From positions 1-64,000 of the forward strand of contig MCFE01000114.1 in assembly GCA_002104905.1 (NCBI GenBank): a stretch of 64,000 nucleotides of DNA, written 5' to 3'. Made by a program: the position numbers and the translations under genes. This document shows, piece after piece, positions 14,712-44,150 of this stretch. Each line of letters opens with the position of its first letter. The first letter of the stretch is position 1. This DNA comes from Basidiobolus meristosporus CBS 931.73. Taxonomy: Eukaryota > Fungi > Basidiobolomycota. A model generated the notes under the pieces. It made no database searches. It saw only the letters and a program-made list of their open reading frames with translations, and had not been told where the DNA came from.

Positions 14712-15967
14712 TTACTGATTTGAGTTGAATACCAAGAGGTTAGGAGTGGTGTCATCCAATCCGGAGATGGTGTCCTGAGTGGCCTGGTTCTGAAGGGCTG
14801 AGTAGACATCAGCTGGACTGTTCAAGCCTCCTTGGGACAAATACAAGGCGGCAACGCCGGCAACATGGGGGCTGGCCATACTGGTGCCGGAGATCTTCTT
14901 GGAGGCGTTGGTACCTCCAATCCAGGAGGAAGTGATGTCTTGGCCTGGGGCAAGGACCTTTACACACTCGCCATAGTTGCTGAAACTGGCCAAAGAGTCG
15001 GAGATAGTGGTGGCGCCAACAGCAAATGCTTGAGCGGCATTGGCAGGGGAAACATTGCAGGCATCTTGGCTCTCATTACCTGCAGCAACAATGAAGGTGA
15101 CGCCAGCCTGGACAGCAGCGTTGACTGCTTGCTTCAACGCCTCACTGTTACCTCCACCAAGTGACATGTTGGCAACACTCTTGCGGCCACTCTTCTTGGC
15201 TTGCTCAGCGACCCAGTTGACTCCAGAGATGACCCCGGAGGTAGTGCCACTTCCACTGCCACTCAGCACCTTGACTCCGATGAGCTTGGCCTTCTTGGCC
15301 ACACCATAGGTGTTACCACCAACAGTGCCTGACACATGGGTACCGTGACCGTTGAGATCATCAGTAGCCTCGCCAGTGATGAAGCTCACGGGGAGGGTAG
15401 CTCTGCCACTGAACTCGGTGTGCTTGACATTGATACCAGTATCGATGATGTACACATCAACTCCTTCACCAGCTGAGTCGGGGTAGTTGTAGGGAGCACT
15501 GGTGTCACGGGTGCGCTGAGAGATTCTCGGAAGACCCCAGCTTGGAGGGTTGGTCTGGACACCGGAGATGGTGAACACTTGCTCAGCCTCGACATACTCG
15601 ACATCCCCATGAGCCTTGAGCTCGGTGACCAAGCCTTGGCTGAGGGTACCGGCGTAGGCGTTGAAGCTTTCCAGGGAGAACTTGCTCTTGAGCTCGTTCT
15701 TCAGTCCGTTGTTACCACTGCGGCCACGGTTATACTGGTCAAGCTTGGTCTTCAAGAACTGGTCAACTGCGATATCATGCAATGCCAAGGGTTAGAGTGC
15801 ATGCCAGGATTGAAGATCATTTCAACAATACCTTTGTTGGGGTCAGCATCCTGCTTGATCTTGACGATGTACTTGTTGGAGACATCCACGATCTGAGCCT
15901 CAGCCAACTGAGCAGTCAGGAGAATAGCCACAAGGAAGCCTAATGTGAAGGTGCGGAAGCTGACCAT
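14712..15967 (-). CDS. Subtilisin-like serine protease (S8A, signal + I9 propeptide), copy 1, subtype A, 396 aa; exons 15967-15832 and 15766-14712
   Basis: Triad motifs IIDTG, NGHGTH, SGTSMASPH; AAGN oxyanion hole; PPSWGL; 65-bp GT-AG intron with CTAAC. Confidence 0.96.
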
Positions 15968-16598
15968 ACTTGCAGAGGGAGTATTGAAAATGCTGTCCGA
16001 TGTGTCTTCAGGGGAGGCATTTTATAGTTGTCTGAAACTCGAGTTCTCTACCTTTTCAAGTGAGAACCAGCCATCCGTTAATTCACCAAAATCAGCACTC
16101 AATGTCTTGGTGACACACACTTGGGCTACAATATGTAAACAGACCGATGGATTCCCTGTTCCCATGAATAATTATGTTCACTGGTTCTTAATATTACTTA
16201 TACTTATTATAGTGGAAGATGCCTATATGTTTCCTAATATTCGGAGCGTAGTTAGTGACCCCCAACGATTTCACCGCGTCACTATTGATGATAAGGAACA
16301 TGCAGATCGTATCCATATATCCAAAAGGGGTGAGAAAAAATATTATTAGATATAATGCCATGTGATGGTTTGTGCGACACAAATTTTGTCCCTTCTCTAT
16401 CAGACATAACATTAGACAGTTTGAATTTCGGAAAATTGGGCAATATACTATCTCGACTTAGTTTGAGTTTTTGTAGTACATCTCCAGTTGCAAAGGCATT
16501 TTATCAAGAATCAAAGTAGAAAACGCTCCCGCAATGGAAACGTAAAACAATTTATTGAAATTGGTTCATTTAGGGATAATCCTACATTGTGTGTCAAG

Positions 16599-17854
16599 TT
16601 ATTGGTTTGAGTTGAATATCAAGAGGTTAGAAGTGGTGTTATCCAATCCGGAGATGGTGTCCTGAGTGGCCTGGTTCTGAAGGGCTGAGTAGACATCAGC
16701 TGGACTGTTCAAGCCTCCTTGGGACAAATACAAGGCAGCAACGCCGGCAACATGGGGGCTGGCCATACTGGTGCCGGAGATCTTCTTGGAGGCGTTGGTA
16801 CCTCCAATCCAGGAGGAAGTGATGTCTTGGCCTGGGGCAAGGACCTTTACACACTCGCCATAGTTGCTGAAACTGGCCAAAGAGTCGGAGATAGTGGTGG
16901 CGCCAACAGCAAATGCTTGAGCGGCATTGGCAGGGGAAACATTGCAGGCATCTTGGCTCTCATTACCTGCAGCAACAATGAAGGTGACGCCAGCCTGGAC
17001 AGCAGCGTTGACTGCTTGCTTCAATGCCTCACTGTTACCTCCACCAAGTGACATGTTGGCAACACTCTTGCGGCCACTCTTCTTGGCTTGCTCGGCAACC
17101 CAGTTGACTCCAGAGATGACCCCGGAGGTGGTGCCGCTTCCACTGCCACTCAGCACCTTGACTCCGATGAGCTTGGCCTTCTTGGCCACGCCATAGGTGT
17201 TGCCACCAACAGTGCCTGACACATGGGTACCGTGACCGTTGAGATCATCAGTAGCCTCGCCAGTGATGAAGCTCACGGGGAGGGTAGCTCTGCCACTGAA
17301 CTCGGTGTGCTTGACATTGATACCAGTATCGATGATGTACACATCAACTCCTTCACCAGCCGAGTCGGGGTAGTTGTAGGGAGCACTGGTGTCACGGGTG
17401 CGCTGAGAGATTCTTGGAAGACCCCAGCTTGGAGGGTTGGTCTGGACACCGGAGATGGTGAACACTTGCTCAGCCTCGACATACTCGACATCTCCATGAG
17501 CCTTGAGCTCGGTGACCAAGCCTTGGCTGAGGGTACCGGCGTAGGCATTGAAGCTTTCCAGGGAGAACTTGCTCTTGAGCTCGTTCTTCAGTCCGTTGTT
17601 ACCACTGCGGCCACGGTTATACTGGTCAAGCTTGGTCTTCAAGAACTGGTCAACTGCGATATCATGCAATGCCAAGGGTTAGAGTGCATGCCAGGATTGA
17701 AGATCATTTCAACAATACCTTTGTTGGGGTCAGCATCCTGCTTGATCTTGACGATGTACTTGTTGGAGACATCCACGATCTGAGCCTCAGCCAACTGAGC
17801 AGTCAGGAGAATAGCCACAAGGGAGCCCAAGGCGAAGGGGCGGAAATTGACCAT
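16599..17854 (-). CDS. S8A subtilisin copy 2, subtype A; exons 17854-17719 and 17653-16599
   Basis: Same motifs; 65-bp intron identical to that of copy 1. Confidence 0.96.
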
Positions 17855-18230
17855 GATATGGTGATTTTCTGGAAGTACAGTTTTTGCTGCCTTATCGGAT
17901 GTTAGCTGGGCACGCTTTATACTCTTTCTCATGCTGCTCATATCAGTTTTAATCTCTCATCGAAGATGCAACAGAAATTAACCGGTGGCAAACTTGAATG
18001 TGGTTTTTGGAAACTCACCCGAATATCATAGTTCGATTTGATAAGAATCAGCGGTGGACGCGGAGATGTTCACATTACCAAGTAAATTCCTGCGATTGTT
18101 GTTAGATAGATCAGCTCAAAGGTCAACATATAATGTGATGTATCATCCTTTTCTGGACATTCGGAGACATCCGTTGGGAAACAAGTTCTCATCTATTAAC
18201 GATATTTGTTGTATTGATTTTGACGATCAC

Positions 18231-18246
18231 TTCCATATATCTGGAA
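18231..18246. promoter_or_regulatory. TTCC-N8-GGAA dyad upstream of copy 2
   Basis: ttccatatatctggaa, about 380 bp upstream of the ATG; recurs upstream of other copies. Confidence 0.45.
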
Positions 18247-18959
18247 TGGTCGTGTGAAGGCATTACTCGCTATATTGTCAATTGATGTGCAGCCCATTGT
18301 TCTTCCACATGGTTCAAACTGTTCATATTCATACCGGAGGGCTCGCCCAGTTGAGTCCTGCGTTAAGTGGTAGCACCATCGACCACCAATAAAGCGCCTA
18401 ATCCAACCTGTACTCTGATGTACTTTCCAGAAAAGATACGGACTACAAGATCATATTTATGAGTTATCAGTACTGCAAATAACTTGTGTGCTTCGTATTT
18501 ATATATATGGATTTTATAGCAAGTGAGTGGTTATTTACGATTACTACGTAGAATTGTAACGATACAAGAATAGCAATTGTAGACAGCCATCCTAAACCTT
18601 GAACACGTTGGCAAACGTATATCAAAAAGGTGTGATACTGCTGACGTGAACTTCCAGTTACGCTTCAGTTGGTATGTATGCTACAGTATGAATCCCAATC
18701 CTTTTCAGGTACTTGAAATTTCGAGTACTAGATAGTTTTGGAGCAGTGTTGGAGATACCTATAGAAGCACATATCCAGTAATGATTCCGCAGGTTTTCTC
18801 ACAGTTATATTCTCCCAAGCTCCTTAGCACTTCGGTTATACTATTATACCATGAGTACTCAACGCTATAAAAGGAATTCTGAATTGTAAGCGGAAGAGTT
18901 GCCCGAAAAGCTATTAGTACTTGAAACCAAAATAATGCTGTATAATTTCCATTCATGGT

Positions 18960-19570
18960 ACTCATTAGTTCACAAGGTTTGCTACCTCCTCAATTTTGTC
19001 GAGATGATGGTGTTCCCAGTTTAGCCATTAATGTGGTATCTATAACACGGCCTTGAATCAAAGCGTAGCGTGGACTTGTGCATACCTTCTTGTAACATGT
19101 ACGAAACACCAACACCGGCAACATGTGAACTTGCCATATTAGTATTGGAAATCCTGTTGGGTGAGTTGATACTTGTCCCGGGGCCAGGATTTTTACATAC
19201 TAGTCACGGTTACTGAAGCTAGCCAAAGAGTTAGAGGGGGTAGTGGTCCAAGCAACGAATATCATTCGTGGGCAGCATTAGTGGGCGAGGCATCTTGGTT
19301 CTCGATACTACGAGCAACAATGAAGGTAACATCAGCCTAGTCGGCTACATTGCTGGCCTGTTTAAATGCCTCACTATTGCCACTTCATAGCGGTATACTT
19401 GAGGCAATCTAGTGACTGCCCTATTTAACTTGACAGCAACACGCTTGACCCCAAAAATAGCTGGGGATATGGGATCATTTTCACAGTCGCACCATATCTT
19501 GAGCTGAGTGAACATACAATAGGTGTCTGTGAAGACAAGTTTCAATAACACTTCAATGACGGTTATACCG
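18960..19570 (-). pseudogene. Heavily decayed subtilisin relic 1 (approximate limits)
   Basis: Recognisable homologous blocks such as gcaacaatgaaggtaac, aatgcctcactattgccac, ttactgaagctagcc and caacatgtgaacttgccatatt; stops and frameshifts. Confidence 0.75.
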
Positions 19571-19789
19571 CTCATGCTTGGTCCTCAGGGATGGGTAAAT
19601 TCTATCAGTAGGAAAATATCGGATTTAAGTTCATGATTCCATTAAAATAATAATCCTTCTTGATTACAACATGATACTGGCGCGTTGCAGATTATCTTCC
19701 GTTCTATACATGTAACTGTCATGTATCACAAGCCTAACAAAACGTTATCCACAAATATATGAATGTGTATTACCAGCTAACCTATGCCT

Positions 19790-20470
19790 GTTTCTTGATT
19801 AGACTTGGAAGCTAGCAGCAGCAGCAATCTAGTCGTCGCGGTCTTGATCCGACATAAACCTCTTTGTGACGAGTATCAAGTGGCAACATAGGTAACTTGT
19901 AGACTAGCCAGGCTAGTATGAGATGCGGTACATTGCCCAGGAGCTAATATTTTCGCACATTTGCCATAGTTGCTGAAGTTGGTTAAAGGTACAGAGATAG
20001 CAACTTTTGCTCCGGTAGCGAATGCCTGAGCAGTAACGGCAGGGAAGATTACATAGGCACTTGACCCACATTATCAGCAACAACAATGAGAGTGAGTGAC
20101 ACCGTTGGAAGACAGAATTGGCCGTTTGCTTCGAAGTCTCACTGTTACCTTCACCAGGTGACTATTGGCAATGATTTTGTGCCTACTCTTCTTGGCTTGC
20201 TTCATAGCTCAGTTTATCCGGTTTTAGCCATTTATTCCTTGATTTCACTTCAAGGCGCTCATAAAACTGTTCACTTCATGTATTCTTCTACAGCCCATTA
20301 TATGCTGAAGCTGAAGTGTCAGTTAATGACGACTTAACTTCATATACTATCCCTTGTTTGCAATATAAGTGCTAAGCTGACGGAAGATTGCTCGTCATGC
20401 GCTATCCAATTTTCAACTGCTGCATCATATCAGCATCTCATCAATGGTTCGTTCTTGACCTTTTTCGAAT
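19790..20470 (-). pseudogene. Heavily decayed subtilisin relic 2 (approximate limits)
   Basis: Blocks ttgccatagttgctgaag, cactgttaccttcacc, ctcttcttggcttgc and gcgaatgcctgagc match the intact copies; the frame is disrupted. Confidence 0.8.
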
Positions 20471-20928: not shown

Positions 20929-22183
20929 TTATTGATTTGAGTTAAAGACCAAGAGGTTAGGAGTCGTTCCTTTCAATCCAGTAATCGCATTCTTGGTGGC
21001 TTTAGATTGAAGGGCTGAGTAGACTTCAGCCGGACTGTTCAAACCTCCTTGGGACAAATACAGTGCTGCAACGCCGGCAACATGGGGGCTGGCCATACTG
21101 GTGCCGGAGATCTTGTTCGATGCGTTGGTGCTTCCAATCCAGGCTGATGTGATATCCTGGCCTGGGGCCAAGATTTTCACACACTTGCCATAGTTGCTGA
21201 AGCTGGCTGAGGTGTCGGAGATGGTGGTGGCCCCAACAGCAAATGCTTGATCAGCATTGGCAGGGGTGACATTGCAGGCATCTTGGCTTTCATTACCTGC
21301 AGCAACAATGAAGGTGACACCGGCTTGGACAGCAGCGTTGACTGCTTGCTTCAACGCCTCACTGTTACCTCCACCAAGTGACATGTTAGCAACGCTCTTG
21401 CGGCCACTCTTCTTGGCTTGCTCAGCAACCCAGTTGACTCCAGAGATGACCCCGGAGGTAGTACCACTTCCACTGCCACTCAGCACCTTGACTCCGATGA
21501 GCTTGGCCTTCTTGGCCACACCATAGGTGTTACCACCAACAGTGCCTGACACGTGGGTACCGTGACCGTTGAGATCATCAGTAGCCTCGCCAGTGATGAA
21601 GCTCACGGGGAGGGTAGCTCTGCCACTGAACTCGGTGTGCTTGACATTGATACCAGTATCGATGATGTACACATCAACTCCTTCACCAGCTGAGTCGGGG
21701 TAGTTGTAGGGGGCACTGGTGTCACGGGTGCGCTGAGAGATTCTCGGAAGACCCCAGCTTGGAGGGTTGGTCTGGACACCGGAGATGGTGAACACTTGCT
21801 CAGCCTCGACATACTCGACATCTCCATGAGCCTTGAGCTCGGTGACCAAGCCTTGGCTGAGGGTACCGGCATATGCGCTGAAGTTCTTCAGAGAGAACTT
21901 GCTCTTGAGCTCATTCTTCAGTCCATTGTTACCGCTGCGGCCACGGTTATATTGATCAAGCTTGGTCTTCAAGAACTGGTCAACTAAATCACAATGCACA
22001 CCTTAGTTTCAATCTACGACGTTTGAAGGCTATTTTACGGCTTATACCTTTGTTAGAATCAGCACCCTCCTTGATTTTCACGATGTACTTGTTGGAAACA
22101 TCAACAATCTGAGCTTCAGTTAACTGGACTGTTAAGAGAATGGCGACCAAGGAGCCCAAAGTGAAAGAGCGGAAATTGACCAT
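20929..22183 (-). CDS. S8A subtilisin copy 3, subtype B; exons 22183-22048 and 21983-20929
   Basis: Intact triad; 64-bp intron. Confidence 0.96.
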
Positions 22184-23077: not shown

Positions 23078-24339
23078 TTATTGATTTGAGTTAAAGACCA
23101 AGAGGTTAGGAGTCGTTCCTTTCAATCCAGTAATCGCATTCTTGGTGGCCTTCGATTGAAGGGCTGAGTAGACTTCGGCTGGGCTGTTCAATCCCCCTTG
23201 GGACAAATACAGTGCTGCAACACCAGCAACATGGGGGCTGGCCATACTGGTGCCGGAGATCTTGTTCGATGCGTTGGTGCTTCCAATCCAGGCTGATGTG
23301 ATATCCTGGCCTGGGGCCAGGATCTTCACACACTTGCCATAGTTGCTGAAGCTGGCCGAGGTGTCGGAGATGGTGGTAGCTCCAACGGCGAATGCTTGAT
23401 CGGCATTGGCAGGGGTGACATTGCAGGCATCTTGGCTCTCATTACCTGCAGCAACAATGAAGGTGACACCGGCTTGGACAGCAGCGTTGACTGCTTGCTT
23501 CAATGCCTCACTGTTACCTCCACCAAGTGACATGTTAGCAACACTCTTGCGGCCACTCTTCTTGGCTTGCTCGGCAACCCAGTTGACTCCAGAGATGACC
23601 CCGGAGGTGGTGCCGCTTCCACTGCCACTCAGCACCTTGACTCCGATGAGCTTGGCCTTCTTGGCCACACCATAGGTGTTGCCACCAACAGTGCCTGACA
23701 CATGGGTACCGTGACCGTTCAGATCATCAGTAGCCTCGCCAGTGATGAAGCTCACGGGGAGGGTAGCTCTGCCACTGAACTCGGTGTGCTTGACATTGAT
23801 ACCAGTATCGATGATGTACACATCAACTCCTTCACCAGCTGAGTCGGGGTAGTTGTAGGGGGCACTGGTGTCACGGGTGCGCTGAGAGATTCTTGGGAGA
23901 CCCCAGCTTGGAGGGTTGGTCTGGACACCGGAGATGGTGAACACTTGCTCAGCCTCGACATACTCGACATCTCCATGAGCCTTGAGCTCGGTGACCAAGC
24001 CTTGGCTGAGGGTGCCGGCATATGCGTTGAAGTTCTTCAGAGAGAACTTGCTCTTGAGCTCGTTCTTCAGTCCGTTGTTACCACTGCGGCCACGGTTATA
24101 CTGGTCAAGTTTAGTCTTCAAGAATTGGTCAACTGTATTATGCAATGGTATTCATCGGTTACTGCTACTGTATGCATTCATGAGGTGAGTTGATAAGTAT
24201 TACCTTTGTTGGAATCGGCACCTTCCTTGATCTTGACGATGTACTTGTTGGAGACATCCACGATTTGGGCCTCGGTCAACTGAGCAGTTAAGAGAATGGC
24301 AACCAAGGATCCCAGGGTGAAAGTGCGGAAGTTGACCAT
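23078..24339 (-). CDS. S8A subtilisin copy 4, subtype B; exons 24339-24204 and 24132-23078
   Basis: Intact triad; 71-bp intron. Confidence 0.96.
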
Positions 24340-25039: not shown

Positions 25040-25640
25040 TTACTGGTTGGAGTTAAACACCGAGAGTGTAGCAGCAGTACCATTCAGTCCAGTAATGGCG
25101 TTCTCGGTGGCCTTAGATTGGAGCGCTGCGCATACCGCAGCTGGGCTCTTCAAACTCCCTCGGGATAAACACAAAGCGGCAACGCCAGCTAAATAGGGAC
25201 TGGTCACACTGGTGCCGGAGACCGTGCTCGATGCGTAGATGCTTCCAACACAGGTTGATGTGACATCCTGACCTGGGGCCAAGATCTTCACACACTTGCC
25301 ATGGTTACTGAAACTAGCCACCAATATAGGCGTGAAAACTCTTGAATGAGAACTTGTTCTTAAACTCACACAAACGCAGTTCTTTTTTACACTGCGACGT
25401 CGATTGTATCGATCGAGTTTAGACTTCAGGAATTGATTAAATGTATTATTGGTGAGAAAGTGAGGTAATGCGGCCGTACTAATTCCAGATGACTTCCGTG
25501 TTGCCATTGTTGGAATCCGCATCTTCCTTGACCTTGACGATGTGCTTGTCAGAGACATCCATAATTTGAGCATCGGCCAGTTGAATAATTGAAAGAGCGG
25601 TCATGAGAGAGCTAAGCGCAACTATACGGAAATAAACCAT
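25040..25640 (-). pseudogene. Subtilisin relic 3 with a large internal deletion
   Basis: Retains a degenerate exon 1 (MVYFRIV...DADSN), QFLKSKLDRYNRRRS and the C-terminal part (ASFSNHGKCVKILAPGQD...VFNSNQ). The region holding the catalytic Asp and His is missing, and the Ser motif has decayed to SGTSVTSPYLAG. Confidence 0.88.
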
Positions 25641-26586: not shown

Positions 26587-27845
26587 TCATTGGTTGGAGT
26601 TAAACACCAAGAGGTTGGGGGTAGTGCCCTTCAATCCAGTAATGGCGTTCTTCGTGGCCTTCGATTGAAGGGCTGAGTAGACTTCAGCTGGGCTGTTCAA
26701 TCCCCCTTGGGACAAATACAGTGCTGCAACACCAGCAACATGGGGGCTGGCCATACTGGTTCCCGAGATCTTGTTCGATGCATTGGTGCTTCCAATCCAG
26801 GCTGATGTGATGTCCTGGCCTGGAGCCAAGATCTTCACACACTTGCCATAGTTGCTGAAGCTGGCCGAGGTGTCAGAGATGGTGGTAGCACCAACCGCGA
26901 ATGCTTGATCGGCATTGGCAGGGGTGACATTGCAGGCATCTTGGCTCTCATTACCTGCAGCAACAATGAAGGTGACGCCAGCCTGGACAGCAGCGTTGAC
27001 TGCTTGCTTCAATGCCTCACTGTTACCTCCACCAAGTGACATGTTAGCAACGCTCTTGCGGCCACTCTTCTTGGCTTGCTCAGCAACCCAGTTGACTCCA
27101 GAGATGACCCCGGAGGTGGTGCCACTTCCACTGCCACTCAGCACCTTGACTCCGATGAGCTTGGCCTTCTTGGCCACACCATAGGTATTGCCACCAACAG
27201 TGCCTGACACATGGGTGCCGTGACCGTTGAGATCATCAGTAGCCTCGCCAGTGATGAAGCTCACGGGGAGGGTAGCTCTGCCACTGAACTCGGTGTGCTT
27301 GACATTGATACCAGTATCGATGATGTACACATCAACTCCTTCACCAGCTGAGTCGGGGTAGTTGTAGGGAGCACTGGTGTCACGGCTGCGCTGAGAGATT
27401 CTTGGAAGACCCCAGCTTGGAGGGTTGGTCTGGACACCGGAGATGGTGAACACTTGCTCAGCCTCGACATACTCGACATCCCCATGAGCCTTGAGCTCGG
27501 TGACCAAAGCCTTGGCTGAGGGTGCCGGCATATGCGTTGAAGTTCTTCAGAGAGAATTTGCTCTTGAGCTCGTTCTTCAGTTCCGTTGTTACCACTGCGG
27601 CCACGGTTATACTGGTCAAGCTTGGTCTTCAAGAATTGATCAACTACATTGGATACGCCTTTAGTCTCTACAGCTTACTATGTGCGATACCGCTATTTGG
27701 TTTCTTTACCTTTGTTGGAATCAGCACCCTCCTTGATCTTGACAATGTACTTGTTGGAAACATCTACGATTTGAGCTTCTGTCAATTGAGCAACCAGTAG
27801 AATTGCAACCAGGGAACCCAGAGTGAAAAAGCGGAAAGTAACCAT
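26587..27845 (-). pseudogene. S8A subtilisin copy 5, subtype B, with two 1-bp insertions in the propeptide (pseudogene or sequencing error); exons 27845-27710 and 27643-26587
   Basis: Extra T near 27581 (cagttccg vs cagtccg) and extra A near 27508 (gaccaaagcc vs gaccaagcc); catalytic domain intact; 66-bp intron. Confidence 0.8.
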
Positions 27846-28594: not shown

Positions 28595-29859
28595 TTATTG
28601 GTTGGAATTGAACACCAAAAGATTGGGGGTGGTGCCCTTCAGTCCTGTAATCGCATTCTTGGTGGCCTTCGATTGAAGGGCTGAGTAGACTTCAGCTGGG
28701 CTGTTCAGTCCCCCTTGGGACAAATACAGTGCTGCAACACCAGCAACATGGGGGCTGGCCATACTGGTTCCCGAGATCTTGTTCGATGCATTGGTGCTTC
28801 CAATCCAGGCTGATGTGATATCCTGGCCTGGGGCCAAGATCTTCACACACTTGCCATAGTTGCTGAAGCTGGCCGAGGTGTCGGAGATGGTGGTGGCACC
28901 GACAGCGAATGCTTGATCGGCATTGGCAGGGGTGACATTGCAGGCATCTTGGCTCTCATTACCTGCAGCAACAATGAAGGTGACGCCAGCCTGGACAGCA
29001 GCGTTGACTGCTTGCTTCAATGCCTCACTGTTGCCTCCACCAAGCGACATGTTAGCAACGCTCTTGCGGCCACTCTTCTTGGCTTGCTCGGCAACCCAGT
29101 TGACTCCAGAGATGACCCCGGAGGTAGTGCCACTTCCACTGCCACTCAGTACCTTGACTCCGATGAGCTTGGCCTTCTTGGCGACGCCATAGGTGTTGCC
29201 ACCAACAGTGCCTGACACGTGGGTACCGTGACCGTTGAGATCATCAGTAGCCTCGCCAGTGATGAAGCTCACGGGGAGGGTAGCTCTGCCACTGAACTCG
29301 GTGTGCTTGACATTGATACCAGTATCGATGATGTACACATCAACTCCTTCACCAGCTGAGTCGGGGTAGTTGTAGGGAGCACTGGTGTCACGGGTGCGCT
29401 GAGAGATTCTTGGAAGACCCCAGCTTGGAGGGTTGGTCTGGACACCGGAGATGGTGAACACTTGCTCAGCCTCGACATACTCGACATCTCCATGAGCCTT
29501 GAGCTCGGTGACCAAGCCTTGGCTGAGGGTGCCGGCGTAGGCGTTGAAGTCTTCCAGGGAGAACTTGCTCTTGAGCTCGTTCTTCATTCCATTGTTACCA
29601 CTGCGGCCACGGTTATACTGGTCAAGCTTGGTCTTCAAGAATTGGTCCACTGTGAATGATAGATGTTCATTGTGGTCAGATTTATTTTACAACATCAGCG
29701 CCCACAAAACACTACGGGTTTACCTTTGTTGGAGTCAGCTCCTTCTTTGATTTTGACGATATACTTGTTGGAGACATCTACGATTTGAGCCTCGGTCAAT
29801 TGGACAGTCAAGAGAATAGCAACCAGAGAGCCCAAGGTGAAAGTGCGAAAGCTGACCAT
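28595..29859 (-). CDS. S8A subtilisin copy 6, subtype B; exons 29859-29724 and 29649-28595
   Basis: Intact triad; 74-bp intron. Confidence 0.96.
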
Positions 29860-30601: not shown

Positions 30602-31866
30602 TCATTGGTTTGAGTTGAACACCAAAAGGTTGGGGGTGGTGCCCTTCAATCCTGTAATCGCATTCTTGGTAGCCTTCGATTGAAGGGCTGAGTAGACCTC
30701 AGCTGGGCTGTTCAATCCCCCTTGGGACAAATACAGTGCTGCAACACCAGCAACATGGGGGCTGGCCATACTGGTGCCCGAGATCTTGTTCGATGCATTG
30801 GTGCTTCCAATCCAGGCTGATGTGATATCCTGGCCTGGGGCCAAGATCTTCACACACTTGCCATAGTTGCTGAAGCTTGCCGAGGTGTCGGAGATGGTGG
30901 TGGCACCAACAGCGAATGCTTGATCGGCATTGGCAGGGGTGACATTGCAGGCATCTTGGCTCTCATTACCTGCAGCAACAATGAAGGTGACACCGGCTTG
31001 GACAGCAGCGTTGACTGCTTGCTTCAATGCCTCACTGTTACCTCCGCCAAGCGACATGTTAGCAACGCTCTTGCGGCCACTCTTCTTGGCTTGCTCAGCA
31101 ACCCAGTTGACTCCAGAGATGACCCCGGAGGTGGTGCCACTTCCACTGCCACTCAGCACCTTGACTCCGATGAGCTTGGCCTTCTTGGCCACCCCATAGG
31201 TGTTGCCACCAACAGTGCCTGACACGTGGGTGCCGTGACCGTTGAGATCATCAGTAGCCTCGCCAGTGATGAAGCTCACGGGGAGGGTAGCTCTGCCACT
31301 GAACTCGGTGTGCTTGACATTGATACCAGTATCGATGATGTACACATCAACTCCTTCACCAGCTGAGTCGGGGTAGTTGTAGGGGGCACTGGTGTCACGG
31401 GTGCGCTGAGAGATTCTTGGAAGACCCCAGCTTGGAGGGTTGGTCTGGACACCGGAGATGGTGAACACTTGCTCAGCCTCGACATACTCGACATCCCCAT
31501 GAGCCTTGAGCTCGGTGACCAAGCCTTGGCTGAGGGTGCCGGCGTATGCGTTGAAGTTCTTCAGAGAGAACTTGCTCTTGAGCTCGTTCTTCAGTCCGTT
31601 GTTACCACTGCGGCCACGGTTATACTGGTCAAGCTTGGTCTTCAAGAATTGGTCCACTGTGAATGATAGATGTTAGTTGTGGTCAGATTTATATTACTAC
31701 ATCAGCGCCCACAAAATATCACGGGTTTACCTTTGTTGGAATCGGCACCTTCCTTGATCTTGACGATGTACTTGTTGGAGACATCCACGATTTGGGCCTC
31801 GGTCAACTGAGCAGTCAAGAGAATGGCAACCAAGGATCCCAGGGTGAAAGTGCGGAAGTTGACCAT
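30602..31866 (-). CDS. S8A subtilisin copy 7, subtype B; exons 31866-31731 and 31656-30602
   Basis: Intact triad; 74-bp intron resembling that of copy 6. Confidence 0.96.
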
Positions 31867-32698: not shown

Positions 32699-33966
32699 CT
32701 ACTGATTGGAGTTGAACACCAAAAGGTTAGGGGTAGTACCCTTCAATCCAGTAATCGCATTCTTGGTGGCCTTCGATTGAAGGGCTGAGTAGACCTCAGC
32801 TGGGCTGTTCAATCCCCCTTGGGACAAATACAGTGCTGCAACACCAGCAACATGGGGGCTGGCCATACTGGTTCCCGAGATCTTGTTCGATGCATTGGTG
32901 CTTCCAATCCAGGCTGATGTGATGTCCTGGCCTGGAGCCAAGATCTTCACACACTTGCCATAGTTGCTGAAGCTGGCCGAGGTGTCGGAGATGGTGGTAG
33001 CACCAACCGCGAATGCTTGATCGGCATTGGCAGGGGTGACATTGCAGGCATCTTGACTCTCATTACCTGCAGCAACAATGAAGGTGACGCCAGCCTGGAC
33101 AGCAGCGTTGACTGCTTGCTTCAATGCCTCGCTATTACCTCCGCCAAGCGACATGTTAGCAACGCTCTTGCGGCCACTCTTCTTGGCTTGCTCGGCAACC
33201 CAGTTGACTCCAGAGATGACCCCGGAGGTGGTGCCGCTTCCACTGCCACTCAGCACCTTGACTCCGATGAGCTTGGCCTTCTTGGCCACACCATAGGTGT
33301 TGCCACCAACAGTGCCTGACACGTGGGTACCGTGACCGTTGAGATCATCAGTAGCCTCGCCAGTGATGAAGCTCACGGGGAGGGTAGCTCTGCCACTGAA
33401 CTCGGTGTGCTTGACATTGATACCAGTATCGATGATGTACACATCAACTCCTTCACCAGCTGAGTCGGGGTAGTTGTAGGGGGCACTGGTGTCACGGGTG
33501 CGCTGAGAGATTCTTGGAAGACCCCAGCTTGGAGGGTTGGTCTGGACACCGGAGATGGTGAACACTTGCTCAGCCTCGACATACTCGACATCCCCATGAG
33601 CCTTGAGCTCGGTGACCAAGCCTTGGCTGAGGGTGCCGGCATATGCGTTGAAGTTCTTTAGAGAGAACTTGCTCTTGAGCTCGTTCTTCAGTCCGTTGTT
33701 GCCACTACGCCCGCGGTTGTATTGGTCAAGCTTGGTCTTCAAGAACTGATCCACTATAAAAGATGATGGTAATCATTGATGAGTCGCATTATCCTATAAT
33801 ATCAGCGCTACCTAGGCACAACAAGCATACCTTTGTTGGAGTCAGCGCCTTCCTTGATCTTGACGATGTACTTGTTTGAGACATCCACGCTTTGAGCCTC
33901 GGTCAACTGAGCAGTCAGGAGAATGGCAACCAAAGAGCCCAGGGTGAAAGTGCGGAAGTTGACCAT
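32699..33966 (-). CDS. S8A subtilisin copy 8, subtype B; exons 33966-33831 and 33753-32699
   Basis: Intact triad; 77-bp intron. Confidence 0.96.
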
Positions 33967-34388: not shown

Positions 34389-34795
34389 TTGTAATAGTAC
34401 TCGCAGTTTTATTACTATATCGTCATGGGAAACCATGGCCGGTTTTTATTGTCATGGATTTGGGAATATTGCGATATGCAACTTTCAACGATAGCTTCTT
34501 ACGCAAGATAAAGTGGTATGTAATTGGGCTTATCCACAGTCGGACACATCCAAGTCTCATGTAACATTAATCTTCCATTCCAAAATCTTGACTGTATCGA
34601 TCACCTTCGCAGGATTGGATTTTATCTAAATATCTCTTTTACACTCTCGTAAAACGTATTAGCAAAGCTATTGCGGATTGGCCCACTGTGATACTTACCT
34701 GCGATAATTCGTCTTGTTCTCTTAACGGATTTTTAGAATATTTTCACCATAGTATTTATTTGAATCATTTCTGAAAACATTGCGCAAAATCAAGT

Positions 34796-36063
34796 TCACT
34801 GGTTTGAGTTGAACACCAAAAGGTTGGGGGTGGTGCCCTTCAGCCCTGTAATCGCATTCTTGGTGGCCTTCGATTGAAGGGCTGAGTAGACTTCAGCTGG
34901 GCTGTTCAGTCCCCCTTGGGACAAATACAGTGCTGCAACACCAGCAACATGGGGGCTGGCCATACTGGTGCCGGAGATCTTGTTCGATGCATTGGTGCTT
35001 CCAATCCAGGCTGAGGTGATGTCCTGGCCTGGGGCCAAGATCTTCACACACTTGCCATAGTTGCTGAAGCTGGCCGAGGTGTCGGAGATGGTGGTAGCTC
35101 CAACAGCGAATGCTTGATCGGCATTGGCAGGGGTGACATTGCAGGCATCTTGGCTCTCATTACCTGCAGCAACAATGAAGGTGACGCCAGCCTGGACAGC
35201 AGCGTTGACTGCTTGCTTCAATGCCTCGCTATTACCTCCGCCAAGCGACATGTTAGCAACACTCTTGCGGCCACTCTTCTTGGCTTGCTCGGCAACCCAG
35301 TTGACTCCAGAGATGACCCCGGAGGTGGTGCCGCTTCCACTGCCACTCAGTACCTTGACTCCGATGAGCTTGGCCTTCTTGGCCACGCCATAGGTGTTGC
35401 CACCAACAGTGCCTGACACATGGGTACCGTGACCGTTCAGATCATCAGTAGCCTCGCCAGTGATGAAGCTCACGGGGAGGGTAGCTCTGCCACTGAACTC
35501 GGTGTGCTTGACATTGATACCAGTATCGATGATGTACACATCAACTCCTTCACCAGCTGAGTCGGGGTAGTTGTAGGGGGCACTGGTGTCACGGGTGCGC
35601 TGAGAGATTCTTGGAAGACCCCAGCTTGGAGGGTTGGTCTGGACACCGGAGATGGTGAACACTTGCTCAGCCTCGACATACTCGACATCTCCATGAGCCT
35701 TGAGCTCGGTGACCAAGCCTTGGCTGAGGGTGCCGGCATATGCGTTGAAGTTCTTCAGAGAGAACTTGCTCTTGAGCTCGTTCTTCAGTCCATTGTTACC
35801 ACTGCGGCCACGGTTATATTGGTCAAGCTTCGTCTTCAAGAATTGGTCCACTATAAAAGACAACGATAACCATTAATTATTTGCCTCATCCTGCAATGTC
35901 AGGGCCACCTAGGGACTGCAAGCCTACCTTTGTTGGAGTCAGCGCCTTCCTTGATCTTGACGATGTACTTGTTGGAGACATCCACGATTTGAGCCTCGGT
36001 CAACTGAGCAGTCAGAAGAATGGCAACCAGGGAGCCCAAAGTGAAAGTGCGGAAATTGACCAT
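34796..36063 (-). CDS. S8A subtilisin copy 9, subtype B; exons 36063-35928 and 35850-34796
   Basis: Intact triad; 77-bp intron. Confidence 0.96.
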
Positions 36064-36819: not shown

Positions 36820-38087
36820 CTACTGGTTGGAGTTGAACACCAAAAGGTTGGGGGTAGTACCCTTCAGTCCTGTAATCGCATTCTTGGTAGCCTTCGATTG
36901 AAGGGCTGAGTAGACTTCAGCTGGGCTGTTCAATCCCCCTTGGGACAAATACAGCGCTGCAACACCAGCAACATGGGGGCTGGCCATACTGGTTCCCGAG
37001 ATCTTGTTCGATGCATTGGTGCTTCCAATCCAGGCTGATGTGATATCCTGGCCTGGGGCCAAGATCTTCACACACTTTCCATAGTTGCTGAAGCTGGCCG
37101 AGGTGTCGGAGATGGTGGTGGCACCAACGGCGAATGCTTGATCGGCATTGGCAGGGGTGACATTGCAGGCATCTTGGCTCTCATTACCTGCAGCAACAAT
37201 GAAGGTGACGCCAGCCTGGACAGCAGCGTTGACTGCTTGCTTCAATGCCTCACTATTACCTCCGCCAAGTGACATGTTGGCAACACTCTTGCGGCCACTC
37301 TTCTTGGCTTGCTCAGCAACCCAGTTGACTCCAGAGATGACCCCGGAGGTGGTGCCACTTCCACTGCCACTCAGCACCTTGACTCCGATGAGCTTGGCCT
37401 TCTTGGCCACACCATAGGTGTTGCCACCAACAGTGCCTGATACATGGGTGCCGTGACCGTTGAGATCATCAGTAGCCTCGCCAGTGATGAAGCTCACGGG
37501 GAGGGTGGCTCTGCCACTGAACTCGGTGTGCTTGACATTGATACCAGTATCGATGATGTACACATCAACTCCTTCACCAGCTGAGTCGGGGTAGTTGTAG
37601 GGGGCACTGGTGTCACGGGTGCGCTGAGAGATTCTCGGAAGACCCCAGCTTGGAGGGTTGGTCTGGACACCGGAGATGGTGAACACTTGCTCAGCCTCGA
37701 CATACTCGACATCTCCATGAGCCTTGAGCTCGGTGACCAAGCCTTGGCTAAGAGTACCGGCATATGCGTTGAAGTTCTTCAGAGAGAACTTGCTCTTGAG
37801 CTCGTTCTTCAGTCCGTTGTTACCAATACGACCGCGGTTATACTGGTCAAGCTTGGTCTTCAAGAATTGGTCCACTATAAAAGATAACGATAACCATCGA
37901 TTAGTCGCCTAATTCTCTGACACTAGGGCTGCCCAATCACTACAAGCATACCTTTGTTGGAATCGGCCCCTTCCTTGATCTTGACGATGTACTTGTTGGA
38001 GACATCCACGATTTGAGCCTCGGTCAACTGAGCAGTCAGAAGAATGGCAACCAGGGAACCCAAAGTGAAAGTGCGGAAATTGACCAT
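36820..38087 (-). CDS. S8A subtilisin copy 10, subtype B; exons 38087-37952 and 37874-36820
   Basis: Intact triad; 77-bp intron; propeptide variant RGRIG. Confidence 0.96.
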
Positions 38088-38484
38088 GATAAAATAGATG
38101 ATTCAATAAGTGATGATATATTGCAATGCGCAGCTGCTACGTTATATAGTTTCAAGGGTGCTCAATCCAGACGTGGTCCAAAATGTTCCTTACCTTATTA
38201 AACTGCAAGATTGCTAGGTACTTTGTAGCACAAAGGTGCTGGTCATGGGAATTTCCCCATCACGGATTAACTACTACACTGGCTAATTCGTATCTCGATA
38301 CGATGTGCTACATTTCTCACGTGATTAAATCTCTTTGATATTCAAACCCTCACAAAGAATAGCGAATCAGCATGGAATGTGGATCCTTTTCGGAATCCCT
38401 AAAGACTGGTGTGACCATCGAGTTTTGACCATTGCGTGGTCAACTGGGCTTCTCGATGCACCTGACTCAACATTTGCCGATCCT

Positions 38485-38500
38485 TTCCATATTTCCGGAA
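38485..38500. promoter_or_regulatory. TTCC-N8-GGAA dyad upstream of copy 10
   Basis: ttccatatttccggaa, about 398 bp upstream. Confidence 0.5.
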
Positions 38501-38900
38501 TGGCGATGGTGTCCATACCCTAATTACTATCTTGCAATGAGGGATTACCAAACGTCCAGTTGTATGGTGAATTACTATTACTGGAGCCCTCTGTTTCAAA
38601 TAAACTGGGATACGGCAATATGATAAAATACACCTTTGGTTTTGCTTCCCACCAAATATCCATAACCGCGGTAAAGGTCAGTAAACTATAATTATTCGCA
38701 GATGGAAACCCCTTCTTGATTTACGATTAATCTAGAAAAATTACCTTGGTTCTATTGGTGTTGACCCGGTGATACGCACACTTTCCAGTATATTCCTATT
38801 CTCTTAGTTTCATTTCCTTTCAACTTGGTGCTCATCATAAAAGGTTTAACTTGGTATTTATTTGATCATATCCTGCTCGAAACGTTGTGATCATCCAAAC

Positions 38901-40168
38901 TTACTGGTTGGAGTTGAACACCAAAAGGTTAGGGGTGGTGCCCTTCAATCCAGTAATCGCATTCTTGGTGGCCTTCGATTGAAGGGCTGAGTAGACTTCA
39001 GCTGGGCTGTTCAATCCCCCTTGGGACAAATACAGTGCTGCAACACCAGCAACATGGGGGCTGGCCATACTGGTGCCCGAGATCTTGTTCGATGCATTGG
39101 TGCTTCCAATCCAGGCTGATGTGATGTCCTGGCCTGGGGCCAAGATCTTCACACACTTGCCATAGTTGCTGAAGCTGGCCGAGGTGTCAGAGATGGTGGT
39201 AGCTCCAACGGCGAATGCTTGATCGGCATTGGCAGGGGTGACATTGCAGGCATCTTGGCTCTCATTACCTGCAGCAACAATGAAGGTGACGCCAGCCTGG
39301 ACAGCAGCGTTGACAGCCTGTTTCAATGCCTCACTGTTACCTCCACCAAGTGACATGTTGGCAACACTCTTGCGGCCACTCTTCTTGGCTTGCTCGGCAA
39401 CCCAGTTGACTCCAGAGATGACCCCGGAGGTGGTGCCGCTTCCACTGCCACTCAGCACCTTGACTCCGATGAGTTTGGCCTTCTTGGCCACACCATAGGT
39501 GTTACCACCAACAGTACCTGACACATGGGTGCCGTGACCGTTGAGATCATCAGTAGCCTCGCCAGTGATGAAGCTCACGGGGAGGGTGGCTCTGCCACTG
39601 AACTCGGTGTGCTTGACATTGATACCAGTATCGATGATGTACACATCAACTCCTTCACCAGCTGAGTCGGGGTAGTTGTAGGGGGCACTGGTGTCACGGG
39701 TGCGCTGAGAGATTCTCGGAAGACCCCAGCTTGGAGGGTTGGTCTGGACACCGGAGATGGTGAACACTTGCTCAGCCTCGACATACTCGACATCTCCATG
39801 AGCCTTGAGCTCGGTGACCAAGCCTTGGCTAAGAGTACCGGCATATGCGTTGAAGTTCTTCAGAGAGAACTTGCTCTTGAGCTCGTTCTTCAGTCCGTTG
39901 TTGCCACTACGACCGCGGTTATATTGGTCAAGCTTCGTCTTCAAGAATTGGTCCACTATAAAAGACAACGATAACCATCGATTAGTCGCCTAATTCTCTG
40001 ACACTAGGGCTGCCCAATCACTACAAGCATACCTTTGTTGGAATCGGCCCCTTCCTTGATCTTGACGATGTACTTGTTGGAGACATCCACGATTTGAGCC
40101 TCGGTCAACTGAGCAGTCAGGAGAATGGCAACCAAAGAGCCCAGAGTGAAAGTGCGGAAATTGACCAT
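38901..40168 (-). CDS. S8A subtilisin copy 11, subtype B; exons 40168-40033 and 39955-38901
   Basis: Intact triad; 77-bp intron differing from that of copy 10 at one base. Confidence 0.96.
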
Positions 40169-40566
40169 GATATAATGAATGCTTCAACGTGTGATGATAC
40201 ATTGGAAAGTGCGATTGCCCAGTTTTATAGCTTCATGAAGAATCAATCTAGCTATGTTCCACATTCATATTACCTGACTGAATCGCAGGATTGATGGTTA
40301 CATTCAAGCACGCAGATGATAGTCTTGGGAACTTCCCCGCCTCGGATTATCTACTAAATTGGCTAATGCATATCTCGATACGATGACCTACATTTCTCTC
40401 GTGATCAAACCTCATTGATATTCGGAACTCCCACGAACAACAGCGAATCAGTCTGGGGTATATGTGCATTTTCTGAGTGCCCAGAAACTAGTATGTGCAC
40501 TGGTTCTGGACTATTGCGTAGTTGACTGGACTTCTCGATGCATCTGACTAATCAGCTGCAGATTCT

Positions 40567-40582
40567 TTCCATGCTTCAGGAA
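40567..40582. promoter_or_regulatory. TTCC-N8-GGAA dyad upstream of copy 11
   Basis: ttccatgcttcaggaa, about 399 bp upstream. Confidence 0.5.
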
Positions 40583-40980
40583 TGGTAATGGTGTTCGCAA
40601 CTGGATTGTCACAAAGCCAGGAGAATTCAGGTAACTTTTGATTTGAATATAATTACTGATAAATAATCATTGATACGATATATGCAACTTGATTGAGTCG
40701 CTTTCCATATAATATTCGCAACCACGGTAACGTTATGAGCAACTCGGCTTACTCGTATTCGGGGGCGCTCAAGTCGCATGTACCACTACTTTTCCTATCT
40801 TAAATCTTGTCTATACCGACCATCTGTTGAGTTACTGAAGATTAGCCCATTGCTATGCATGCTCTTCAAATGGCCTCTTCTGTTTGTTGTATTCCGCTTT
40901 ATATTAATGATTATTATAAGAATCTCAACTTGGTATTTATTTGAATCATATCCTGCTCGAAATGTTGTGATCATCCAAAC

Positions 40981-42236
40981 TTACTGGTTGGAGTTGAACA
41001 CCAAAAGGTTGGGTGTAGTTCCCTTCAATCCAGTGATCGCATTCTTGGTAGCCTTCGATTGAAGGGCTGAGTAGACTTCAGCTGGGCTGTTCAATCCCCC
41101 TTGGGACAAATACAGTGCTGCAACACCAGCAACATGGGGGCTGGCCATACTGGTGCCCGAGATCTTGTTCGATGCGTTGGTGCTTCCAATCCAGGCTGAT
41201 GTGATATCCTGGCCTGGGGCCAAGATCTTCACACACTTGCCATAGTTGCTGAAGCTGGCTGAGGTGTCGGAGATGGTGGTAGCTCCAACCGCGAATGCTT
41301 GATCGGCATTGGCAGGGGTGACATTGCAGGCATCTTGGCTCTCATTACCTGCAGCAACAATGAAGGTGACGCCAGCCTGGACAGCAGCGTTGACAGCCTG
41401 TTTCAATGCCTCACTGTTACCTCCACCAAGTGACATGTTGGCAACACTCTTGCGGCCACTCTTCTTGGCTTGCTCGGCAACCCAGTTGACTCCAGAGATG
41501 ACCCCGGAGGTGGTGCCGCTTCCACTGCCACTCAGTACCTTGACTCCGATGAGCTTGGCCTTCTTGGCCACACCATAGGTGTTGCCACCAACAGTGCCTG
41601 ACACGTGGGTACCGTGACCGTTGAGATCATCAGTAGCCTCGCCAGTGATGAAGCTCACAGGGAGGGTAGCTCTGCCACTGAACTCGGTGTGCTTGACATT
41701 GATACCAGTATCGATGATGTACACATCAACTCCTTCACCAGCTGAGTCGGGGTAGTTGTAGGGGGCACTGGTGTCACGGGTGCGCTGAGAGATTCTCGGA
41801 AGACCCCAGCTTGGAGGGTTGGTCTGGACACCGGAGATGGTGAACACTTGCTCAGCCTCGACATACTCGACATCCCCATGAGCCTTGAGCTCGGTGACCA
41901 AGCCTTGGCTGAGGGTACCGGCATAGGCGTTGAAGTTCTTCAGAGAGAACTTGCTCTTGAGCTCGTTCTTCAGTCCATTGTTACCACTGCGGCCACGGTT
42001 ATATTGGTCAAGCTTCGTCTTCAAGAATTGATCAACTGTGAAACCAGTCAATAGAATGGGTTAGAATTGGCAATACTATCTTAGATCACTCCCACATTAC
42101 CTTTGTTGGAATCAGCACCCTGCTTGATCTTGACGATGTACTTGTTGGAGACATCAACGATTTGAGCCTCGGTCAACTGAGCAGTCAAGAGGATGGCAAC
42201 CAGGGAGCCTAAAGTGAAAGTGCGAATGTTAACCAT
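40981..42236 (-). CDS. S8A subtilisin copy 12, subtype B; exons 42236-42101 and 42035-40981
   Basis: Intact triad; 65-bp intron. Confidence 0.96.
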
Positions 42237-42634
42237 AGCGATAGTGCTGAAACGCTGTCTGTTGTCTGTTTTAGCAGTTGGCTCGTCCCTTTATATATTT
42301 GTGTTGGAACTGGAGCTCTGTTGAAAACCTGCTTCTTTTGGCATCGTGATTAACATACTGAAAACTGGTAGAACGGACTCAATCAGCATCATGACATTTT
42401 GCAATTGATAGGCTCTCTACCCATGTGCTGTAGTGTATCCAGATTATAATTATTACGATTTCTCATGAGCATAGCGAGTTTTTCTCCTGGGTGACTACGC
42501 AAATTCCTTGAATCGGGATATTCTATACCCATCCGCTTGCTATTATGGAAACGGTGCAATGTTGAACAAGTTATCTGTAATATATGGAATGGCTAGTAAT
42601 TGCGAATATCTCCCTGGGAACACTTGCCGATCCT

Positions 42635-42650
42635 TTCCATATTTCGGGAA
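42635..42650. promoter_or_regulatory. TTCC-N8-GGAA dyad upstream of copy 12
   Basis: ttccatatttcgggaa, about 399 bp upstream. Confidence 0.5.
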
Positions 42651-43029
42651 CGTAGATGTGAATATTGTAGGCACCATTCCGTCAGTTGATAAGAAATCTG
42701 TACCATTGCCAATTTGGTTGATTTGGCATATAGCAGTATATGTTAGATGGAAAGTGTTTTGTGTAGGCGGCTATACCTCGTGCGACGCGTCTACATTATG
42801 ACTTTGTGGAGTGTTTCATTTGGTAACTTGTGATAATTGTCTTGTAATTTCCAATTTTATTGGGTGGCTGCTTCTTATTAGCTCTCTTGGGCGTAGGATT
42901 TCACCATACTTTACATTCTACAGTCATTTCATTGCGTTGAGCTGCTGGCCATCTGGTTCTATAGCTAAGCGCGATTTCCACGATACTGGATGTTGGTTTT
43001 TTTTTATTATCCTACGTTTATAGTTTTCA

Positions 43030-44150
43030 TATGGAAATATACTGGTTGCATCAGAGGTTTGGAAGGCTGATGGGATCTTAGGTAACCTTGAGTTAAAGGA
43101 TGAATGGCACTTTACCTGGGAATCTCAATCATCCTTGGGAAAATACTAAGCGATACCCCCGGTTACATGTGGACTAGCTATACTAGAGCCGGAGATTTCT
43201 TCGGAAGCGATATACCTAATAATAGCAGCACCGGTAACAGAAACCATGGTACTACCAGCTCACTGAGAGGTTGTTGGATGGTCTTTGCTTAAACACTAGA
43301 GATGGTGAGCACATGCTCATCATACCGGACAATATCATGTTAGCCTAGACTTTGTTGCTTGATAATAGGCTATTCTCAACCCCCGGGGCATGCTAAATGA
43401 CACTCCAGTGTCACGGGAGTCACCTCTCCACCAGCCAAAGCTATTATGACGATATCTCCCAAGTATTCGTACCTGTATTGCGGCAAGCTTCTAGTCTTTC
43501 AGGTGCGATAAGTAACTGGGATGACTTGATTTCTATTCGGAAGCTAATACGTGAGTGGAACCTGAAGTTAATAAACCCATTGGAATCCTTGTACTGGGGT
43601 CAATCCTTTCCATATTGATGATGTGAAAACATCAGCCATGAACGTGACTCGATTCATTCCCAGGTTTGATGAGCGAACTAGTCAGTGACCAGAAAGGAAA
43701 AATGGTTTCATTCGAATGGTCTTGGACCGGTATTTTCTTTACCTAGGATTGCGTCTCTACTGTGGTACTGCTACCGGTAGTATGCATGAATCCCCAACTT
43801 ACCTCTGGATTCATCACCGTTCCAAGAATACCGTAGCAACACAATGTAGAAACCATTACCGGTGTTTCGTTTGTTTCAGAGGATTTTGTGCGGATTTTGA
43901 ATTCCATGATAAGCTGGTGAACATAACCTCACCATTTTTAACATCCTCATGAATTTTGGAACCTTGGCTGAGTGTACAATGAAAGATATTGGGAGGGGAC
44001 CTGTTCGTGAGTTTGTTTTTTGGTTAACCAGGGATTCCATAGTCATTGTCTTGAGCATGCGTGATTAAAGTCCCATTTGAACAATCAACAAGATTGCGAA
44101 TCAGTTTAGATAGTTTACCATAGTTGCAATTCGCTCTCGAGACTGTGTAC
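43030..44150 (-). pseudogene. Heavily decayed subtilisin relic 4 at the array edge (approximate limits)
   Basis: The minus strand gives ISGSSIASPHVTGGIA*Y near 43130-43200 (vs ISGTSMASPHVAGVAALY), tattgatgatgtgaaaacatc near 43613 (IIDTG region) and TLSQG..HEDV near 43940-43975. Confidence 0.7.

Follow-up and report, generated by a model that had tools for sequence, protein, structure and literature searches.

In ribosomal DNA (rDNA), the whole repeat unit, spacer included, is homogenized to near identity, and the units of human AMY1 are young and vary in copy number. Gene conversion that is limited to the coding sequence (CDS) and combined with purifying selection has been described for ribosomal-protein paralogues of fungi, where a cDNA donor was proposed (PMC6993855), and for the stress-inducible Hsp70 genes of mammals (PMC5865164). 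Expansions of protease families are documented in animal-associated fungi (PMC6169396, PMC5371821, PMC3207900). Here, we analyzed a tandem array of S8A subtilisin genes in Basidiobolus meristosporus CBS 931.73. The array lies in a 64,000-nucleotide (nt) stretch, positions 1-64000 of contig MCFE01000114.1 in the PacBio long-read assembly GCA_002104905.1 (PMC7466969), which we refer to as the window; the array within it is called array A, and its copies are numbered c1-c12 in order of stop-codon position. We judge, with a probability of roughly 0.72, that this is an old birth-and-death array shaped by gene conversion inside exon 2 and by strong purifying selection. A sequence-only reading of the window had nominated the array as an undescribed system. 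That was an overstatement: the genes are annotated, the family has been counted (PMC6169396) and the process is already known (PMC6993855, PMC5865164), and array A is a clear example of this process rather than a new kind of system.

Array A shares with the fungal expansions of proteinase K/Pr1-type S8A proteases the family itself, the layout of signal peptide, I9 propeptide and S8 domain, and a lineage-specific multiplication in a fungus that feeds on animal-derived material. However, the paralogues in the published reports are diversified, whereas in array A a single mature enzyme is shared by nine intact adjacent genes. Arnesen et al. 2018 (PMC6169396) counted the B. meristosporus genes in their 'group A', and the words 'tandem' and 'duplication' are absent from that paper. 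Tandem arrangement, gene conversion and concerted evolution are not discussed in the two fungal subtilase surveys that we checked (PMC6169396, PMC5371821), and our literature searches found no description of array A.

The ribosomal-protein and Hsp70 cases resemble array A in that promoters, flanks and introns have diverged while the CDS is converted and the protein is held by selection; the benefit proposed for them is dosage of a highly used product. They differ in copy number and function: each involves only two or a few genes, with intracellular housekeeping or stress roles, whereas array A has 12 tandem genes for a hydrolase predicted to be secreted and is homogenized only in the interior of one exon. 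Like rDNA and histone arrays, array A consists of head-to-tail units with one product. By contrast, its spacers and introns are saturated, the CDSs of c3-c12 are 93-97% identical, and homogenization does not extend over the whole unit. Human AMY1 likewise provides several copies of one secreted digestive enzyme, the quantity of which is the presumed selected trait. Unlike those of AMY1 and CUP1, however, the units of array A are old and lack near-identity over coding and noncoding sequence.

Twelve genes and their product

The window contains 12 head-to-tail, two-exon S8A subtilisin genes and four decayed relics, all on the minus strand. Eleven of the genes are intact and one (c5) is frame-broken. 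Exon 2 is visible in each case as a minus-strand open reading frame (ORF), and these twelve ORFs span 314-358 amino acids (aa). In the gene model, 136 nt of exon 1 are followed by a GT..AG intron (64-77 nt), which occupies the same position in every copy, and by 1055 nt of exon 2, for a CDS of 1191 nt in eleven copies. Seven copies end in TAA, three in TGA and two in TAG; the stop-codon positions are the lower coordinates given for c1-c12 in Table 1. From c6 to c12, the genes are regularly spaced at 2.0-2.1 kb. A tblastn search with the c8 protein recovered the relics as four minus-strand fragments with stops, deletions or both. The sequence-only reading had listed 12 full-length copies and four relics with introns of 64-77 nt, three types of stop codon and differing spacers. 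Gene models and tblastn agree with this count and with each of these features, except that c5 is not an intact copy. All twelve genes are already present in the GenBank annotation (ORX98383-ORX98394), in which gene coordinates coincide with ours, for example at the ends 14712, 30602, 32699, 34796 and 36820.

Sequence comparisons place the product among S8A proteases of the proteinase K subfamily, with secretion and activity predicted. The protein matched the Pfam families PF00082 (Peptidase_S8, E 1.5e-40) and PF05922 (I9 propeptide, E 2.7e-4), both above the gathering score. The closest solved structures are of the proteinase-K type: 2b6n (E 3e-84), then 5wsl, 4dzt and 1ic6, down to 1e-61, these later matches being a keratinase, aqualysin and proteinase K. 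Matches to subtilisin Carlsberg and PCSK9 were far weaker (~1e-37). The Asp-His-Ser triad, with the oxyanion Asn, is in place: the DTG, HGTH and GTSMA motifs occur in 12 of 12 translations and align to the proteinase-K-like 2b6n. The N-terminus is hydrophobic and signal-like, as judged by eye from the translations.

Copies c4, c7, c9 and c11 encode one and the same 396-aa protein. The replacements found relative to it (one each in c8 and c10, two in c12, three in c3 and five in c6) all fall within residues 1-81, in the signal peptide and propeptide, and the nine intact copies among c3-c12 all have the same mature domain (~residues 115-396). Within the mature domain of c3-c12, 87 codons vary only synonymously and a single codon varies in the encoded amino acid, in c5. 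This copy, which is 2 nt longer than the others, has two frame breaks in the propeptide region (one near 27581, the other within 27506-27516) and either is a pseudogene or carries PacBio homopolymer errors. Copies c1 and c2 represent a second isoform, 26-30 residues from c3-c12. The claims of the sequence-only reading that copies 3-12 share one mature domain and that the array encodes essentially a single enzyme therefore hold for the nine intact copies, but the first has to be qualified for the one replacement in c5 and the second does not extend to c1 and c2.

An old array with a homogenized exon interior

ATG-to-stop nucleotide identity is 93-97% among c3-c12, with 36-83 synonymous differences per pair, and even the copies that encode identical proteins (c4, c7, c9 and c11) are still 36-50 synonymous differences apart. 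The ratio of nonsynonymous to synonymous divergence (dN/dS, or omega), which the sequence-only reading had suggested as a check on its proposal, was 0.013 among the intact copies of c3-c12, where dS had a mean of 0.224 (range 0.12-0.38) and dN a mean of 0.0029.

Introns were compared with a shuffle-calibrated aligner, using the 99th percentile of shuffled introns as the cut-off, and flanks were compared by how far blastn homology reaches beyond the gene; both measures replaced initial free-end-gap identity matrices, which were noisy. In 46 of 66 pairs, intron similarity did not exceed the cut-off. Three pairs have introns that are 89-100% identical and were either co-converted or co-inherited. 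Homology detected by blastn mostly ends 0-10 nt upstream of the ATG and 0-8 nt past the stop codon, and this includes the c1-c2 pair. Spacers S8, S9, S11 and S12 are homologous over their full length, yet their Jukes-Cantor distances are 0.43-0.65 and they differ by many indels; the other spacers are unalignable. In exon 1, dS is 0.87 for the 30 pairs with unrelated introns and 5' flanks, compared to 0.84 between array A and array B, a second subtilisin array in the same genome (described below). Because introns, flanks and spacers have diverged, exon 1 dS has reached 0.87 and the relics are heavily decayed, we conclude that array A is old and that its duplications are not recent.

The interior of exon 2 has a different history. 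We profiled nucleotide diversity (pi) over 11 array A copies, including c1 and c2 and leaving out c5. The profile along the CDS is U-shaped: pi starts at 0.10-0.15 (first 120 nt), drops to 0.000-0.019 at CDS nt 300-540, is low over most of nt 300-840 and reaches 0.12-0.18 over the final 110 nt. The stretch at nt 300-540 differs by 7-12.5% between array A and array B. Consistent with this pattern, dS over residues 115-280 is 0.124 within c3-c12 and 0.112 between c1-c2 and c3-c12, compared to 0.635-0.661 between arrays A and B. Over residues 281-396, by contrast, c1-c2 and c3-c12 are separated by a dS of 0.754 and a dN of 0.093, and the two arrays by a dS of 0.875. A dS of ~0.63 against array B shows that synonymous sites in the interior can change freely, but within array A they have been held alike. 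In trees, arrays A and B are reciprocally monophyletic, and copies are more alike within an array than between arrays.

Maximum-likelihood trees built from CDS nt 1-300, 301-840 and 841-1188 disagree with one another. Copies c1 and c2 branch from within the rest of the array in the tree for nt 301-840, whereas in the tree for nt 841-1188 they sit on a long branch with 100% support. The pairwise homoplasy index (PHI) test was significant for c3-c12 (p<=0.0005); of the informative site pairs, 55% are incompatible by the four-gamete test. Individual copies are mosaics as well. The 5' flank of c7 is shared with c4 and its intron with c6; c10 has upstream sequence in common with c4, c7, c8 and c11, and downstream sequence in common with no copy. 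The c1-c2 and c10-c11 introns are 99-100% identical, although c1 and c2 have no alignable flank and c10 and c11 have none downstream of the stop codon.

Three other causes of the invariant interior were considered and rejected. Codon bias is only moderate: the effective number of codons (ENC) is 44-46 in array A, compared to 50-60 in five neighboring ORFs and 45 in a sixth. GC-biased conversion does not fit, as third-position GC content in the interior (0.59-0.61) does not exceed that of the gene ends. Constraint at the nucleotide level, for example from antisense ORFs, is not compatible with a dS of 0.63 against array B over the same stretch.

Conversion, selection and competing explanations

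The analyses above show directly how the genes are built, that the array is old, that a conversion signal is present and that the protein is under selection. On the explanation that we favor, a tandem S8A array specific to the B. meristosporus lineage would have gained and lost copies by birth and death over a long time. Conversion would act only where long unbroken homology survives, that is, in the interior of the 1055-nt exon 2, and would fade toward both gene ends, while very strong purifying selection would hold the protein. The outcome would be nine intact copies with unrelated promoters, introns and 3' ends that yield one mature enzyme; c5, if expressed, would be one residue off. The sequence-only reading had compared the array to the concerted evolution of rDNA and histone genes. 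Homogenization is indeed seen in the exon 2 interior, but the likeness to rDNA or histones breaks down at the introns and spacers, which are mostly saturated.

Several points weigh against this explanation. Much of the protein identity would arise from constraint alone, as the mature domain already has a low omega (0.02-0.04) between arrays. Of 55 pairs examined with a GENECONV-style longest-run test, only one (c3-c4, CDS 1120-1191) remained significant after Bonferroni correction, and the conversion signal is therefore one of regional contrasts and PHI, not of discrete tracts. Finally, expression of most copies is an inference, and so is the supposed benefit, a high or flexibly regulated supply of a single extracellular alkaline serine protease that would serve feeding on protein-rich material. 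With regard to the second point, the exchanges appear to be short and frequent, giving a mosaic too fine-grained for a long-tract test, because that test was significant in one pair only. With regard to the first, by a rough estimate ~8 amino-acid-variable codons would be expected beside the 87 synonymous ones, and none was seen in the intact copies; uniformity within the array is on this account somewhat beyond what constraint alone would give, which fits a role for conversion in helping to purge variants.

We also compared fixed and within-group differences in a table of the McDonald-Kreitman (MK) style. Fixed differences comprised 30 nonsynonymous and 21 synonymous changes, compared to <=18 and 126, respectively, within groups (p 4e-10). 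This contrast is no evidence of positive selection: the fixed replacements are concentrated in the C-terminal third, which is unconverted and has a dS of 0.75 and an omega of 0.12.

Sequence motifs around the genes bear on their upkeep. A TATA box lies at -59 to -67 from the ATG in 10 of 12 copies, inside flanks that are otherwise unalignable, and AATAAA is found 32-56 nt past the stop codon in 11 of 12. The copies without a canonical TATA box are c5 and c6, and in c5 the AATAAA is further out, at 84 nt. Because the placement of TATA and AATAAA persists in unrelated flanks, these data suggest that each intact copy has been kept as its own transcription unit, and expression is predicted. Exact-protein look-ups for expression evidence found the array proteins only on the GenBank scaffold.

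The same motifs allow for a regulatory emphasis, which we consider possible but tentative: the array could place one invariant enzyme under about eleven unrelated promoters, with a TATA box at ~-60 as their only common element. Separate cues (for example gut passage, dung, insect remains or tissue) might then each induce the one protease, and conversion inside exon 2 would keep the product uniform while regulation diverges freely.

Birth and death with purifying selection but without conversion, as argued for ubiquitin and histone H4, accounts for the large excess of dS over dN, for the pseudogenes and relics, for the behavior of exon 1 and for the low omega that is also found between arrays. 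We nevertheless regard it as unlikely. Under this model, synonymous divergence would match age along the whole gene, and we found 0.87 in exon 1 against 0.11-0.12 in the interior, where sites that reach a dS of 0.63 between arrays are near-invariant within array A. In addition, the model does not anticipate the change in affinity of c1 and c2 along the gene, the significant PHI test, or near-identical introns beside unalignable flanks in c1-c2 and, on the downstream side, in c10-c11.

A still less probable alternative retains conversion and draws the donor from cDNA or mRNA, such that spliced transcripts of highly expressed copies homogenize exons only. Such a donor would explain why introns and flanks are spared, and it was proposed in a case where dS is much below intron divergence (PMC6993855). 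A spliced donor would also cover exon 1, however, and exon 1 is not homogenized (dS 0.87). The intron is kept at the same position in all copies and is 89-100% identical in three pairs, and the U-shaped profile is explained by DNA-templated conversion, with its edge effects, inside a 1-kb block of homology.

The sequence-only reading took array A for a gene-dosage amplification locus. A recent amplification for dosage would have young, near-identical units generated by unequal crossing-over in the manner of CUP1 or AMY1. The regular 2.0-2.1 kb spacing of c6-c12 and the identity of the mature protein are in keeping with such an origin. It is refuted by the diverged noncoding sequence, with spacer distances of 0.43-0.65 at best and the remaining spacers unalignable, and with introns at random similarity in 46 of 66 pairs; the units are old in their coding sequence too, with CDS identity of 93-97%, pairwise dS of 0.12-0.38, 36-83 synonymous differences per pair and a dS of 0.87 in exon 1, and the relics are decayed. 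Least probable of all is a smaller locus inflated by misassembly of noisy long reads, which the sequence-only reading had named as a possible refutation: single-base frame breaks in c5 and in some copies of arrays B and D could be PacBio homopolymer errors, but each unit can be told apart by its own spacer, intron and set of synonymous variants, where an artefactual duplicate would be near-identical throughout.

Related arrays, neighboring genes and biological meaning

The B. meristosporus genome has at least three such arrays: A, B and a third that we call D. In array B, on MCFE01000132.1, small HMA/ATX1-like genes are interspersed among seven subtilisin copies. Compared to array A it is more uniform, with a dS of 0.116 and introns that are all 73 nt long and 88-100% identical. 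Among its copies, B5 has a disrupted C-terminus and B7 an internal stop. Part of array B is repeated on MCFE01001165.1 (1-14898), a 14.9-kb contig whose copies C2, C4 and C5 correspond to B2, B4 and B6 with identical or near-identical proteins; this contig is probably a haplotig or a very recent segmental duplicate. Array D, on MCFE01000143.1 (retrieved stretch 5014-17485), consists of six related genes that are 84-91% identical to c8. Several of these genes are frame-shifted or fragmented, and the genes that flank them (CTP transferase, PPR) are unlike those of A and B. In a protein tree, A, B and D together form a clade of B. meristosporus only, with a support of 98 and very short branches. 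More diversity is seen among the nearest B. ranarum proteins, which come from an assembly that is fragmented and in which copies may have collapsed. A search for interleaved HMA/ATX1 genes or relics within array A found only one, at 44493-44758. Because an HMA gene heads array A and HMA genes interleave array B, a single HMA-subtilisin locus is the probable ancestor of both arrays.

Downstream of array A lie genes for an FGE-sulfatase, a lipocalin and a GH18 chitinase with CBM5/12, and upstream lies a GH46 chitosanase gene (Table 1). GH46 is a mainly bacterial family, and the GH46 ORF is a candidate for horizontal transfer. With its chitinase and chitosanase, the neighborhood is rich in hydrolases suited to arthropod or fungal cell-wall material. 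GC content is 0.375-0.376 at 58000-62000, compared to 0.40-0.52 elsewhere in the window; just downstream of this low-GC stretch, a 389-aa ORF (62278-63447, plus strand, GC 0.40) had no Pfam match. Antisense or alternative-frame ORFs of 89-110 aa recur inside each subtilisin copy (for example, 15040-15309 on the plus strand). These are a by-product of the conserved coding sequence and not evidence of separate genes.

Table 1 Features of array A and its surroundings, in window coordinates unless another contig is named
Feature	Position	Strand	Remarks
GH18 chitinase, C-terminal CBM5/12	2027-3562	-	~11 kb downstream of the array
Lipocalin_2 (bacterial-type lipocalin) ORF	9528-10136	+	uninterrupted ORF, downstream of c1
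FGE-sulfatase-domain ORF	11476-12930	-	uninterrupted ORF, immediately downstream of c1
c1	14712..15967	-	ORX98383 = P0001; isoform type 1; intron 65 nt; stop TAA
Homogenized exon 2 interior, c1 as example	15128..15667	-	CDS nt ~300-840; near-invariant across array A, diverged from array B
c2	16599..17854	-	isoform type 1; 98% identical to c1 ATG-to-stop, intron 100%; flanks unrelated
Relic 1	19078-19396	-	matches residues 246-361; in-frame stops; decayed
Relic 2	19855-20217	-	matches residues 228-360; 39% identity; in-frame stops; decayed
c3	20929..22183	-	intact; mature domain same as intact c4-c12; 3 replacements in signal peptide and propeptide
c4	23078..24339	-	intact; 396 aa; protein identical to c7, c9, c11
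Relic 3	25043-25640	-	internal deletion: residues 1-85 fused to 305-396; 36-71% identity
c5	26587..27845	-	ORX98387, modelled at 371 aa; frame-broken
c6	28595..29859	-	intact; 5 replacements, all in residues 1-81
c7	30602..31866	-	intact; protein identical to c4; mosaic: 5' flank c4-like, intron c6-like
c8	32699..33966	-	intact; 1 replacement, residue 26
c9	34796..36063	-	intact; protein identical to c4
c10	36820..38087	-	intact; 1 replacement, residue 62; intron 99% identical to c11 intron
c11	38901..40168	-	intact; protein identical to c4
c12	40981..42236	-	ORX98394 = P0129; intact; 2 replacements in signal peptide and propeptide
Relic 4	43077-43238	-	matches residues 323-376; 39% identity; decayed
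Small HMA (ATX1-like copper chaperone) gene	44493-44758	-	upstream head of array A
GH46 chitosanase-domain ORF	46871-47596	+	Pfam E 5e-24
Array B	MCFE01000132.1, 10001-19575 and 1151-11252		retrieved stretches

Array A provides an unusually clear record of a tandem family that is uniform in product without being young. One locus displays three zones: spacers and introns that are saturated, an exon 1 that is held by selection alone, and a converted exon 2 interior, with array B in the same genome as an internal control. The arthropod-associated setting proposed by the sequence-only reading applies loosely, as Basidiobolus lives as a saprobe in guts and dung and is occasionally pathogenic in vertebrates. 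One proteinase-K-type enzyme is probably a major extracellular protease of this fungus; it is encoded about ten times at this locus, and arrays B and D add further isoforms. A reasonable rationale for such an arrangement, although one that we infer, would be dosage or the use of many promoters. The finding is relevant to how B. meristosporus feeds in amphibian and reptile guts and in dung, and it may bear on the extracellular protease activities that have been reported for clinical isolates (PMC9670544).

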